Shown here: positions 57,750 through 64,000 of the stretch, piece by piece | How positions within the stretch are numbered: the first letter of the stretch is position 1 | How the letters are laid out: each line of letters opens with the position of its first letter | NCBI RefSeq assembly: GCF_041956535.1 | Contig: NW_027192201.1 | Location: 610,206 to 674,205 of the forward strand | DNA: 64,000 nt | Direction of reading: 5' to 3' | Source: Calcarisporiella thermophila CBS 279.70 | Lineage: Eukaryota > Fungi > Calcarisporiellomycota | Translations under genes and position numbers: made by a program | The notes under the pieces: model-generated | What the model saw: the letters and a program-made list of their open reading frames with translations, nothing else | Told to the model about the DNA's origin: nothing | Databases searched by the model: none

Positions 57750-60305
57750 ATGCATTCCCGCACCATCAAATCAGTTACTCCCACTTCATCTCGGCTCCAC
57801 CGTTCCCCTGCCGCCAACTATGTTTCCCCCTTCGAAGGTCGTCAGGCTGCCTCCACTCGCCACCGCCTCGACACTCCGCCCGCCACACCTGTTGTCAAAG
57901 ATAATATGCTGGCGCCATCAGCCGAGCCGAGAGTTGGCGATAGGGTAGCCGTGCCAAGCATGGGTCTGGTGGGAATCTTGAGATTCATAGGCGAAATAGA
58001 GATTAAGCCTGGAGTCTGGGCAGGGCTTGAGCTGGAGGGCGGCGGGGGGAAGAACAGCGGCTCTGTTAATGGGTAAGTTCGCATAGATTCCGATAAAATT
58101 CAAAATGCGCTCGACATAATCGCAAACACGGTTAATAGAGTCAAGTATTTCGATTGCGCCCCCAATTCTGGCATCTTCGTTCTTGCCAACAAGCTCACCA
58201 AAATTGAGGAGCCACGCGTCGCGCAAACGAAGACTCCAACTCCTCCCTCTGTTCCCACCACGGCCCCCTCTACACAGTTATCCAACTCCGCTGCTCCTTC
58301 GACTCGGAAAACCCCCACCACTAATAGAAGAGTGGCTCGACCTGCAGTGCCTGATAAATCCCCTGTGCCTGCCACTCCTGTTTCAAAGGTGGCAATGAAA
58401 CCTCCCGCTCAGCCGAAGACAACCCCGCGTACTGGAGGTGCAAATGTGTCGCGTGGGACTAAAGGCTACCCAGCCAACCCTTCCGCCGCCCCCACTGCTG
58501 CCACCATGGGTGGCAGAGCCGGGACTAGCACCACCCGCGAGCGAAGCGTGTCGAATAGCTCATCGACCTCCTCCACCCTAGGAGTTGGGGCTTATCGTCG
58601 AGGAGCTGTGACCCCTTCCGGTAGAAGCGCTAGCCAGGCAAGCCGAAGATCTGCCTCCACGACCCCCACCCCTGTGTCTCCACGGCACAGAGCAAATACC
58701 ATTACACGGCGGGTGGCAGCAGACGAAAAAGATATCCCGATTACCGGAAAAACACTGAACGGGGCGAGAGCAAGCCTGGTATCGGAAGAGGAAAACAGCG
58801 AGCACATCCTGAGGCTGATGGAAGTGGTGCAGAGTCGAGAGGAACGTATCCGAGGTCTTGAAGCAGAGCTTGCACAGATGAAGCTGCAGGTGGAGGAGAA
58901 ACAGGTCCAGATGGCCGATGAGCATAATGCTATCAACGAATACCATACCCACGAGGTTGAGGAGTTGAAATCGCAGATCAAAGAGTTGGAGAGATTGGGC
59001 CGCGAGGCGATCATGGACTACGAGAGGCGTGTTGAAGCGCTGGAGGAGGAACTTCGGGAACGCGACGACATACTGAGAAGCTTGGATGCCGGGGGGGCAG
59101 AGGGTATTGCGCCCAGAGCCGAGGAGCTGGAGGATTTGCAGAGTCTTTTGGAGGAGCGAAATGAGAGAATCGCTGCACTCGAAACCGAGATAGAGGATCT
59201 GCGCCGTGTTGGTGAGGATGCTCTCGAAGCCGTCGCCACAATGAAGCATGAGAAGGAGGCAGCAGAGGCTGTGCTAGCGAAAGAGCAGGAGGGACTGAGT
59301 GCGCTTCGGGTTGAGCTGGACCAAGTCGTGAGACAGCAGAATGCGAGGGACGAGAAGCACAAGGAGGGAGAGGCTGCGCGGGGTCGGCTGGAGAAGGAGA
59401 TGCTAGATCTGAAGAAGCAGTTGCGGGAGGTTGAGAGGGAGCGTGACGAGCTTGCGGCAAGAGTGGAGGCGGGCTCGCTTGTCTCCACTGAACCCATCAC
59501 CACTCCTCCCCACGACGCCATGGTGGACAAAGATGTAGAATACGAGGGCGAAATAAATAAACTGAAGCGTGCAGTGCAGGAGCTTGAGCGGCGTAACGCA
59601 CTGCTCACGGAGGAGAGAGATGACTTGCTCGCCAACCAAAAACGTATGGAGGGAGAGCTTCTGCAGTTGATGGATGAGGTGGAGCGCCTCCACACTGCGG
59701 AGTCCACGGCCGTATTCGAGTTACTGGGTGACGACAACCCAAGCGGTTCTGAGAGTGGCCCCATGGACGAGGTGGAAAAGCTAAAGGCGCTTGTGCGAGA
59801 GAAGCAGCGGGCCCTTGATCAACAGCGCAGAAACTATGGGAAGGACACCCGCGAGCTGAGAGACTCACTTGCAGAGCTGGAGCGAAAGAAGGAGAGAGAG
59901 GTGAAGGCCCTCCAGCTCGAGGTTGCCGAGCTGGAAGCCATGGTTGAAAGTAATGTGATGCGAGAGACGGATATGGAGGCGCGGCTGGAGCGGGAGAAGA
60001 AGGAGTCTCGCCGTCTGGCCGGGGAGCTGGAGAAGCTTAAACGCGAGAGTGCGAGTGTGAAATCGAGTGCGCGATCGAGCGCCTCTTTTACAGATACGAC
60101 CAGCATGGCCAATGCAGAAAAATTGGACGATGAGCCGGCGGCGAGGCGTCACTCTGTTTCGAACCGAAAAGCGGAGAAGCCCTCGGAGGTCAATGGGAAG
60201 CCTGGGGAGAGCGCGGAGGCCGAGCTGTATTGCGACATTTGCGAAGCGTATGGGCACGACATCCTCACGTGCAATGTGGTGTTTGACCCCGAAAACAAAA
60301 AATAA
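57750..60305 (+). CDS. CLIP-170/Tip1/Bik1-like microtubule plus-end protein: CAP-Gly, coiled coil, CCHC zinc knuckle
   Basis: VGDRV..GILRFIG..PGVWAGLEL..GKNSGSVNG|VKYFDC..GIF; long coiled coil; YCDICEAYGHDILTC. Confidence 0.9.
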
Positions 60306-60756: not shown

Positions 60757-63417
60757 TTATTTCTTGGGCGCGTCCTCCAGCTCAATGATGATCTCCTCTG
60801 CCGCTACGCTGGATCCAGGGGTGACGTGCACCTTCTTCACCTTGCCGACGCACGCCGCCCGTAGCACATTCTGCATTTTCATGGCCTCCACCACGGCGAG
60901 CTCGGCCCCCTCCGAGATGACATCCCCTTCTTTCACCGCGACACTGACCACGCTTCCCGGCATGGGCGAGAGCACCAGCTTGGCGAGATCGGGCTTCGGC
61001 TTCTCGATCATGTGAGACGAAAGGGCGTGCTGGCGCTCGTTGTGGATGGTGATATCAAACTAGAGGAGAGGAAAAAAGCACCTTGGGTCAGTAGAGTCTC
61101 CAGCAAAGGGCCACCAGTGGGGCGCCTACCTTGGTGCCGAGATGCTGCAGACGGAAGCCCATTGGCAACACATCCAGATACTGCACGGTCAGGTGCTCTC
61201 CCGACTCGAAGTCGGCCTCGACGAGGGGCGACTCGATGGGCCACTGCGACGAGACCACGGTGGGCGGGAGATCAGCGGTCGAGATCTAGAGAACCGAACA
61301 AGGCAAGCAGAGCGTTAATACTCAGGTCCACACCCATTCAACGGGGTAATTTCCGTACTATAAACTTGTCCTTTCCGCCCAGGCTGTCGCCCTCCCTCTC
61401 CACGCGCACCTTCACGTCTCCTGCGCCGGCGATCTTCACCCAAATGTCCCATACATTTGGCATCTTCCCCTCCAGGTCACCCATCAAGAGTGCATGCTTC
61501 CCGCTGCTTCCCCAGTTCCGGTTCCGGAGGTTGCGCTTGGCATGGACAAGCGCAGCCACCGCCGCCAGCTGGTTCAGGCTCTTCGAGTCAAGGGTGGCGC
61601 CCTTGAATCCTTTGGGATATTCCTGCGCCAGGAATTTGGTCGAGATATCACCGCTGACGAAACGTGGGTGAGAGATGACTTCGCGCAGTAGAGGTATATT
61701 ATGGGTTACGCCTATGAGCCACGGCGAGAGAAATAACGTCAGTCCTACTAAGCTCCCCTTAGCCTCTGCATCCCACTATGCCTCACCTTTGATTACATAG
61801 GAATCCAGCGCCTTCTTCATGACGTCCAACGCCTCATTTCGGGTCTCACCATAGGTGCAGAGCTTGCAAATCATGGGATCGTAGTAGATGCTGATCTCGC
61901 TTCCCTCCACGACGCCCGAGTCGCAACGCACCTCGCCAGCAGTCCCCACTGGCTCCTGGTATTTGCTCAAGCGCCCGATACTCGGCAGGTACTTCTCGGG
62001 GTCCTCGGCGTACACACGGGATTCGAAGGCCCACCCCTTGAGGCGGACATCCTCCTGCTTCAGGGCCAGGCGCTGTCCAGCAGCGACGCGGATCATCTGC
62101 TCGACCAGGTCGATGCCCGTGATGTACTCGGTGATGGGGTGCTCCACTTGTAACCGGGTGTTCATTTCCAAGAAGTAGAAGTTCCGCTGCGAGTCGACCA
62201 GGAACTCGACCGTACCCGCGGACTCGTACCCCACGTGCTTGGCCAAGGCCACGGCTTGCTCTCCCATGGCTCGACGCGTGGCCGCGTCCAAGTGTGTGGA
62301 GGGCGCCTCTTCGATCACCTTTTGGTTGCGTCTCTGGATACTGCACTCTCGCTCCGGAAGATACAGCGTGTTGCCGTACTTGTCGGCGAGCACCTGGATC
62401 TCGATGTGGCGGGGGTTGTCGATGAACTTCTCGATGAGCAGCCGGTCGTCACCAAAGCTGGACATCGACTCGTTCTTGGCGATCTTGAATCCATCGCGCA
62501 CCTCCTGGTCATTCCAGGCAATACGCATACCTTTTCCACCACCACCGGCCGAGGCTTTGATCATCACGGGGTAGCCAATCTCATGGGCTTACGGAGGGTA
62601 AACATAACAAAAAGGGGTAGGCGTTTTGGTTAGAGAGGGGATTCGCGTACTGAGAGCAGGCGTAGAGAGCGACTCACCTATCTGTAGAGCATGCTCCTCA
62701 TCCCTCACTACACCGTTGAATCCGGGAATTGTGTTCACCTTTGATTCCTTTGCAATGATCTTACTCTGAATCTTGTCACCCATAGCGGCCATGGCGCTCT
62801 GGTTTGGCCCAATGAAGGTCACGCCCGCCTCATCAAGGGCCTTGACGAAGGTAGCGTTCTCAGAGAGGAAACCATAGCCTGGATGAACAGCCTGAGCACC
62901 AGTGTCCTTAATGGCTTTCAAAATGGCAGGGATATTGAGGTAGCTTTGACTAGTAGGGGGAGGGCCCTAATGAAGTAAATAAAATTAGCATCATCCCATG
63001 AGTATCCAGTGCGACGAACACGCACCACTGGGAAAGCCTCGTCGGCCATTTGGACATGCAAACTGTTCGCATCGGCATCGGAGTGGATGGCTACTGTTCT
63101 GATGCCCATTTTCCGGCAGGTACGAATTACGCGTACGGCAATTTCACCGCGGTTAGCAATGAGGATCTTATCGAATGCCTGTGGCCAGTATATGAGGAAT
63201 TAAAAGATCTCGTTAGAAACCATGTGGATACCAGGAGTCATCTCTACAAGCTACCAACCTTCCCATCCTGAACCACCGGAGGAACCTCATCAATTTTGGC
63301 ATAGGCAACCCGAGGTGATGAATGGAAGTGGCGCGCGAATAATGGGGAGCGGCGCGCAGCAATACGCGAACCTGCGCCTACTCCAGTTCTTAGGGATAAG
63401 AGGAGTGACGTTGCCAT
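60757..63417 (-). CDS. PCCA: Propionyl-CoA carboxylase alpha subunit, mitochondrial
   Basis: Presequence; [18 protein letters not shown]; [58 protein letters not shown] (PCCA-like rather than MCCA-like); biotinyl EAMKM. Confidence 0.92.
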
Positions 63418-63670
63418 GGTGTGCAGTAGTGAGAAAGAGTGGGAGAAAAGGAAATGCGGGGCAAACAAATAACAAGAAGTACTTCCACGGCAATATTCAA
63501 GGAGGAGGGGGGGGAATCTTTCGGACTTTTTTTCCACTCTTGTCCCCACCGCTCGTGGGAAAGTTGCACTTGAAAAAATTATTGTGATAACTAAAGAAAA
63601 TCCTCCATAGTATTTCTTCCCCACACCCAGTTTTTTTGTTTTAGGCGTCTCTTTTGTGCAGATTCTGAAA

Positions 63671-64000
63671 ATGCTACGAGCAGCACTCAGGGCTTCTTCA
63701 CTCGCGGTCCGAAGACATCATCTCCCGATTATCGCACCCACATCCACTATAATTCGTCACGCGTCGGGTGCATCGAAGGAGAATGTAAATACATCCATGC
63801 CAATTGTTCCTGCCTCCTAGAAAACTGAACCGTGTTTTTTTTTTATCCTACCAGGCCGCCATCAGAAGGATCGAGGAGAAGCGTGCAGAAGCAAAGCTTG
63901 GTGGAGGCGAGAAGAGAATCGAAGCCCAGCACAAACGAGTAAGTATCGTCTTTTTCTTCTCTATTCGTCTCGGCTGTTATTGTAACATCAGATATTGACG
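63671..64000 (+). CDS. PCCB: Propionyl-CoA carboxylase beta subunit, 5' part (truncated by window edge)
   Basis: Presequence MLRAALRASSLAVRR...; exon 2 RRIEEKRAEAKLGGGEKRIEAQHKR closely matches human PCCB [25 protein letters not shown]. Confidence 0.88.

Follow-up and report, generated by a model that had tools for sequence, protein, structure and literature searches.

Propionyl-CoA carboxylase (PCC) assembles as an alpha6-beta6 enzyme, as established for orthologues, and in humans the genes for its two subunits, PCCA and PCCB, lie on different chromosomes. Here we describe a locus of the fungus Calcarisporiella thermophila in which the two genes instead share a 253-bp spacer and run away from it head-to-head, the spacer carrying a single copy of the 8-mer CGTGGGAA. 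The locus lies at the end of a 64,000-nucleotide stretch of DNA, hereafter the window (G000:C11:610206-674205), from a genome of 28.2 Mb in 116 contigs whose genes contain introns. In comparison with the human enzyme (PDB 7YBU) the domain order is the same, BC-BT-BCCP in the alpha subunit and two carboxyltransferase halves in the beta subunit, single exons reach 411 and 358 bits, a very high similarity, and both systems have N-terminal extensions and an EAMKMQN motif.

Adjacent subunit genes of a biotin-dependent mitochondrial acyl-CoA carboxylase have a fungal parallel in Aspergillus nidulans, where the leucine catabolism genes ivdA, mccB and mccA are clustered (PMC4117967). That cluster however belongs to Dikarya and joins 3-methylcrotonyl-CoA carboxylase (MCC) with IVD, whereas C. 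thermophila pairs PCC and has its MCCA, MCCB and IVD genes on three different contigs. A B12-dependent propionate route has been described in early-diverging fungi from Blastocladiella emersonii expressed sequence tags (PMC1550239) and in a non-Dikarya survey (PMC8085122). The same set of enzymes is found in C. thermophila (PCC alpha and beta, epimerase, mutase, adenosyltransferase), with no methylcitrate dehydratase found. The texts of these two papers, as searched, mention neither a head-to-head PCC pair nor a shared promoter motif, and the word 'propionyl' is absent from PMC8085122. For the spacer element the closest described systems are the CSL transcription factors, RBP-J/Su(H) in animals and Cbf11 and Cbf12 in Schizosaccharomyces pombe, which share the same canonical site and whose metabolic targets include a biotin carboxylase gene (PMC5279717, PMC4569565). 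Both Cbf11 and Cbf12 bind the canonical metazoan CSL element, and Cbf11 binds and activates lipid metabolism genes including cut6, the acetyl-CoA/biotin carboxylase gene (PMC4569565). The process differs, being lipid synthesis in S. pombe while the candidate targets here belong to mitochondrial leucine, valine and propionyl-CoA catabolism and the acetyl-CoA carboxylase gene lacks the box in the region searched (see below). The number of paralogues differs also, with at least five in C. thermophila against the two described in S. pombe.

PCCA is on the minus strand with its ATG at 63417 and PCCB on the plus strand with its ATG at 63671, leaving 253 bp between the two start codons (63418-63670, 43% GC), within the limit of about 1 kb applied here to divergent pairs. 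The CGTGGGAA box occupies 63554-63561 on the plus strand and by sequence is a canonical CSL/RBP-J-type site. It starts 117 nt before the PCCB ATG (109 nt from the end of the box to the ATG) and lies 137 nt from the PCCA ATG. Our explanation, to which as a whole we give a probability of about three in four, is that the PCC pair is served by a shared bidirectional promoter and is part of a dispersed catabolic regulon, the factor behind which is most likely CSL. The spacer, a putative bidirectional promoter that would also hold both 5' untranslated regions, would give matched output of the two PCC subunits, with one sequence-specific factor at the box driving both PCCA and PCCB. The same factor would coordinate the pair in trans with dispersed genes of leucine, valine and propionyl-CoA catabolism, and would most likely belong to the CSL (LAG1-type) transcription factors that the genome encodes. 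The PCC genes appear to be co-regulated in trans, as members of a dispersed regulon, and with coordination of this kind physical clustering would be unnecessary.

In order to place the pair in a wider context we examined the PCCB loci of ten other species using public gene calls, taking the distance between called gene ranges as the spacer and seeking PCCA near PCCB by the Pfam content of the called genes and by tblastn with the C. thermophila PCCA exons. Fonticula was the sole holozoan-side outgroup in this sample. PCCA and PCCB were adjacent and divergent in Umbelopsis sp. (spacer 172 bp), Diversispora epigaea (322 bp), Gonapodya prolifera (510 bp), Blastocladiella emersonii (607 bp) and Podila minutissima (1733 bp). 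In Spizellomyces punctatus the pair is oriented as in these species but has one AAA gene between its members, and Conidiobolus coronatus, Coemansia erecta, Zychaea mexicana and Fonticula alba were without a PCCA within 8 kb of PCCB. The tblastn searches confirm these placements in the sampled species. The arrangement therefore recurs in five other fungal lineages, five of the ten species and several fungal phyla, and is conserved, as the proposal made in an earlier reading of this DNA from its letters (the sequence-only reading) required. The flanking genes are different in each species and only the PCCA-PCCB pair itself is conserved, while the chance adjacency of two named genes is approximately 2 in 10^4 for an assumed gene number of about 10^4. 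The simplest reading is that the head-to-head pair would be the ancestral fungal arrangement, lost several times. We found no published report of a head-to-head PCC pair in the literature searched. At the PCCB loci of Fonticula alba (L031:2997-6242) and Coemansia erecta (L033:3097-5154) the nearest called gene upstream encodes an AMP-binding acyl-CoA synthetase, which may be a propionate-activating enzyme.

Comparison of words across the spacers of six species made one 8-mer that is not of low complexity stand out, CGTGGGAA, while the 6- and 7-mers common to these spacers were A-rich and no better than those of shuffles. Besides C. thermophila the box is found 72 nt before PCCB in Umbelopsis, 858 nt before it in Podila and 199 nt before it in Coemansia, though in the last PCCA is not adjacent, and in all four species it is in the sense orientation of PCCB. 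Only two copies are present in the whole 64-kb window, the other one inside a coding exon. As a local control we took 84 kb around the pair, which contained two other sites, both of them in coding exons (of a sphingomyelinase-like gene and of prohibitin). At 63428-63445 of the window, 11-28 nt from the PCCA start codon, there are also two degenerate CSL-like words, AGTGAGAA and AGTGGGAG, which may be weak extra sites or due to chance.

Genome-wide there are 601 copies of CGTGGGAA in 28.16 Mb, or 0.021 per kb, and the reversed control is commoner with 717. The box was nevertheless found at 10 of 38 further loci tested, against approximately 0.5 expected. These 38 loci were picked family by family as the work progressed and were not pre-registered; the motif was discovered only after the first seven (MUT, MMAA, MCEE, two MMAB, MCCA and MCCB) had been located or, for MCCA, selected as a test locus. 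When all 8-mers were counted without bias over ten upstream regions, the PCC locus excluded, CGTGGGAA ranked first, being present in six of the ten, for which the binomial probability against the genome density is 2.9e-10. A putative regulon behind the shared 8-mer is well supported statistically.

The distance from the box to the putative ATG ranges from 16 to 330 nt across loci. It is 16 nt at HMG-CoA lyase, 17 nt at MCEE, 49 nt at MCCA, 60 nt at ACAD8, 81 nt at MCCB, 106 nt at IVD, 124 nt at a HIBCH paralogue, 142-230 nt at MUT and 323 nt at pyruvate carboxylase, and at MMAA the box falls within or next to exon 1. Comparison with solved structures gave the identities of IVD, ACAD8 and HMG-CoA lyase. 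Boxes are found on either strand relative to the gene, an argument for an element that acts at the level of DNA and not of RNA, and the flanks suggest a longer motif, CGTGGGAAWAWT. A copy is also present about 700 nt upstream of DLST, the E2 of 2-oxoglutarate dehydrogenase, and a variant, TGTGGGAA, is found at an E1 locus on contig C22, at GCDH and at a second HIBCH. The box was not found in the 2.6 kb searched at the acetyl-CoA carboxylase gene (ACC), nor at MCAD, an ACAD10-like gene, two biosynthetic HMGL-like genes, two generic aldehyde dehydrogenases, five other genes of the enoyl-CoA hydratase (ECH) family, the PDH E2 genes or three E1 genes.

Several further observations concern individual copies of the box. 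Those of the HIBCH paralogue (C5:880142; L065:1243) and of the 2-oxoglutarate dehydrogenase E2 (C1:1142350; L067:851) share an identical 18-nt context, ATTTGTTACGTGGGAAAT. The start of pyruvate carboxylase (G000:C15:326544; L002:1114 onward) seems to be without a presequence-like N-terminus (MSPGFSHEHSVD) and a second CGTGGGAA lies inside the gene. Two copies 150 bp apart (C3:1297222 and C3:1297372) fall where a transaldolase gene and a membrane-protein gene converge, in the 3' region that separates the two, and were taken as chance. A second candidate motif, CCTTTGAG, was present in only four upstream regions, one of which belongs to a non-member, and was dropped.

The 8-mer is the RBPJ motif (PMC5279717), and sites matching the canonical CSL response element YGTGRGAA are accordingly present at the PCC spacer and at the 10 of 38 loci. 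The genome contains at least five loci with a full LAG1-DNAbind domain (C3:601941, C6:1067694, C23:155750, C9:846029 and C1:491493), which score 86-154 bits, and one CSL reading frame that was examined, of 753 aa, has a LAG1-DNAbind domain of 150 bits. Split or partial LAG1-DNAbind matches are seen at four other loci (C5:671229, C16:350661, C18:388822 and C18:392362), the two on C18 being 3.5 kb apart. A CSL factor is favoured as the reader because the box equals the canonical CSL site, and we put the odds that a LAG1-type factor does read it at about even. The fuller proposal is that such a factor directly controls a dispersed regulon of mitochondrial leucine, valine and propionyl-CoA catabolism with its cobalamin-dependent branch (MCEE, MUT and MMAA), not only in Calcarisporiella but, since the box is conserved upstream of PCCB there, also in Umbelopsis, Podila and Coemansia. 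This falls a little short of an even chance and is put forward tentatively.

A number of observations weigh against the explanation of a shared promoter within a CSL-read regulon. The start codons of the other loci were mostly placed by eye from presequence-like open frames, so that the distances given above are to putative ATGs. AUH, ECHS1, DBT, an SBCAD-like gene, MMSDH and both MMAB loci are without CGTGGGAA, while a copy is present at pyruvate carboxylase, a gene from outside the pathway. In Diversispora, Gonapodya and Blastocladiella the pair is retained but the canonical box is lacking, four of the ten sampled lineages have a broken pair, and tight head-to-head pairs can persist neutrally as few breakpoints fit between the genes. 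With regard to the factor, the putative CSL link is drawn from motif identity, and the BTD domain of the one CSL paralogue examined scores 22.7 bits, below the Pfam cut-off.

In the alternative that survives best the regulon is real, but the reader of the box is not CSL and could be, for instance, a regulator of amino-acid catabolism of the zinc-finger or Zn2Cys6 kind, the CSL match being a coincidence. As the assignment comes from the identity of the motif with described sites (PMC5279717, PMC4569565), as the flanks hint at the longer CGTGGGAAWAWT, and as the CSL targets described in fungi have roles in lipid metabolism and the cell cycle and include acetyl-CoA carboxylase, the gene for which is boxless here within 2.6 kb, we regard such a reader as a serious possibility, albeit one we would not bet on. 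The 8-mer however is an exact high-affinity CSL site, the CSL family is unusually large in this genome, and a literature search of limited extent brought up no further fungal factor that has this site.

Less probable, and in our judgement unlikely, is that the pairing is a neutral relic of an early fungal ancestor, with separate promoter halves that have no selective link and little room for rearrangement in a spacer of 0.2-1.7 kb. Conidiobolus, Coemansia, Zychaea and Fonticula have lost the pairing yet kept the genes, Spizellomyces tolerates the inserted AAA gene, and the spacers vary from 172 to 1733 bp with no sequence common to all of them. MCCA and MCCB moreover function unlinked in the C. 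thermophila genome. Against this, the pair has been kept in six lineages (Chytridiomycota s.l., Blastocladiomycota and Mucoromycota s.l.) despite changing flanks, and a single regulon box lies between PCCA and PCCB.

There is nothing unusual in the PCC genes as such, and a B12-dependent propionate route has already been described for non-Dikarya fungi; what we did not find in the literature searched is a long-kept head-to-head PCC pair, or an 8-mer tying such a pair to scattered catabolic genes. A pair kept from chytrid-grade fungi and Blastocladiomycota to Mucoromycota offers a clean case in which subunit stoichiometry may constrain eukaryotic gene order. The shared 8-mer provides a testable handle on the regulation of B12-dependent metabolism in early-diverging fungi and, because it is the canonical CSL site, bears on CSL function outside animals and fission yeast. 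Were the CSL-regulon reading true, it would imply a metabolic role for CSL proteins in fungi without a Notch pathway.

Both genes are intact, bear introns and are orthologous to those of PCC. PCCA has seven exons separated by six GT-AG introns of 59-90 nt and encodes a reading frame of 737 aa that is free of stops across the joined exons. On the minus strand, exon 1 (63259-63417) carries the start codon and a 53-aa N-terminal extension, a putative mitochondrial presequence, with the GT donor following directly. The Biotin_carb_N domain begins in exon 2 (63026-63178), and its remainder (PF00289, 58.9 bits) together with the beginning of the ATP-grasp domain is in exon 3 (62678-62966). Exon 4 (61787-62587) encodes ATP-grasp CPSase_L_D2 (234.1 bits) and Biotin_carb_C (83.2 bits), and exon 5 (61359-61711) the end of the BC domain and the first half of the BT domain (PCC_BT, 20.8 bits, profile positions 1-55). 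The second BT half follows in exon 6 (61130-61285; PF18140 PCC_BT, 30.3 bits against a cut-off of 23.5), and exon 7 (60757-61059) holds the biotinyl carrier domain (Biotin_lipoyl, 58-59 bits), the EAMKMQN biotinylation motif and the stop codon (60757-60759). On the plus strand, exon 1 of PCCB (63671-63784) carries the start codon and a putative presequence and exon 2 (63855-63938; AAIRRIEEKRAEAKLGGGEKRIEAQHKR) is the last inside the window, with four further exons past its end and the gene ending at G000:C11:675880. The 542-aa database model of the C. thermophila PCCB protein maps onto the locus (L003:77-2081) without mismatch. The sequence-only reading had the two genes divergent with exactly these start codons and this spacing, all of which the gene models confirm.

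The N-termini of both proteins are non-conserved, rich in Arg, Ser and Ala and lie ahead of the conserved domains. The first 40 residues of PCCA contain no D or E, the N-terminus of PCCA has six R and that of PCCB five R and one K, and the acidic-free stretch of the two proteins extends over about 36-40 residues. These features fit putative mitochondrial presequences, which the same earlier reading had also noted for both genes.

Domain and identity searches were performed with single exons, and the distinction between PCC and MCC was drawn from how far the scores against solved structures of the two enzymes lie apart. The largest PCCA exon, at 411 bits to human PCCA, scores 398 bits to a bacterial PCC alpha chain (3N6R) and 285 to human MCCA, while the PCCB exon scoring 358 bits to human PCCB gives 106 to human MCCB. 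Searched against Pfam exon by exon, PCCA has a complete biotin carboxylase module (Biotin_carb_N, ATP-grasp and Biotin_carb_C), with the PCC-type BT domain sitting between BC and BCCP, and the PCCB exons together cover positions 4-493 of the PF01039 carboxyltransferase profile. The nearest relatives of PCCB are in early-diverging fungi, with identities of 72-80%, and next come those of animals and other opisthokonts, an order that points to vertical descent. Separate MCC genes are present elsewhere, an MCCA at C4:702k with 269 bits to MCCA versus 186 to PCCA and an MCCB at C21:433k with its top scores to MCC beta chains. We therefore predict from sequence that the pair is the nuclear genes for the alpha and beta subunits of mitochondrial PCC, as first proposed from the letters, and the grouping with MCC that would have spoken against that proposal was checked by bit scores, which place both proteins closer to PCC. 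That the genes encode MCC or another acyl-CoA carboxylase is extremely improbable, for although the domain architecture is common to all biotin-dependent acyl-CoA carboxylases, the score gaps towards PCC are large, the BT domain is PCC-specific, distinct MCCA and MCCB genes exist and orthologues carry the name PCCB in many fungi and animals.

NCBI places C. thermophila in Calcarisporiellomycota, outside Dikarya, as the sequence-only reading had implied, and whole-genome family searches located the remainder of the methylmalonyl-CoA route. MUT is at C5:480.6-482.8k (seven exon matches over profile positions 2-512), MMAA at C1:1.392M, MMAB at C5:1.194M and MCEE at C3:782.7k (187 bits, above the cut-off). 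In the same searches the MmgE/PrpD (methylcitrate dehydratase) family was not found, which agrees with its reported absence in early-diverging fungi (PMC8085122) and with the non-Dikarya B12 route that had been suggested. A second MMAB-like locus (Cob_adeno_trans, G000:C7:960238-960947) has six stop codons inside its best match, and is thus a decayed copy or else a gene very rich in introns. A glyoxalase/epimerase-like match at C20:639058-641049 scores 33.7 bits to the methylmalonyl-CoA epimerase model, below the cut-off, and is followed approximately 0.8 kb downstream by a gene of the enoyl-CoA hydratase family that lies on the same strand.

The route is complete but dispersed over contigs, and as MUT, MCEE, MMAA and MMAB are on other contigs there is no metabolic gene cluster. 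Taking a cluster as at least three adjacent genes of one pathway, only PCCA and PCCB are adjacent here. The suggestion that the pair marks the edge of a larger B12-linked propionate cluster, made when the DNA was first read, is therefore the part of that reading that fails. Fungal catabolic clusters do exist, as with ivdA, mccB and mccA of A. nidulans (PMC4117967), but the 20 kb past the window end opens with PCCB, an ELO fatty-acid elongase and then the gene for the RPC5 subunit, with no pathway gene matched, MUT is on C5, MCEE on C3, MMAA on C1 and MMAB on C5 and C7, and each of the other fungi examined has different flanking genes. The cluster reading has next to no chance of being correct and for this genome is already refuted by the contig positions: all four genes sought beyond the window are in the genome and none is beside the pair.

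On the side of the PCCA stop codon the neighbour is a gene for a 657-aa coiled-coil protein (58332-60305 of the window, plus strand), convergent with the 3' end of PCCA. This protein is Ser/Thr-rich, has a C-terminal Cys/His knuckle (CDICEAYGHDILTC) and is unrelated to the pathway. Across the window as a whole the GC content is 34-44% in positions 1-28000 and 47-57% in positions 30000-64000.

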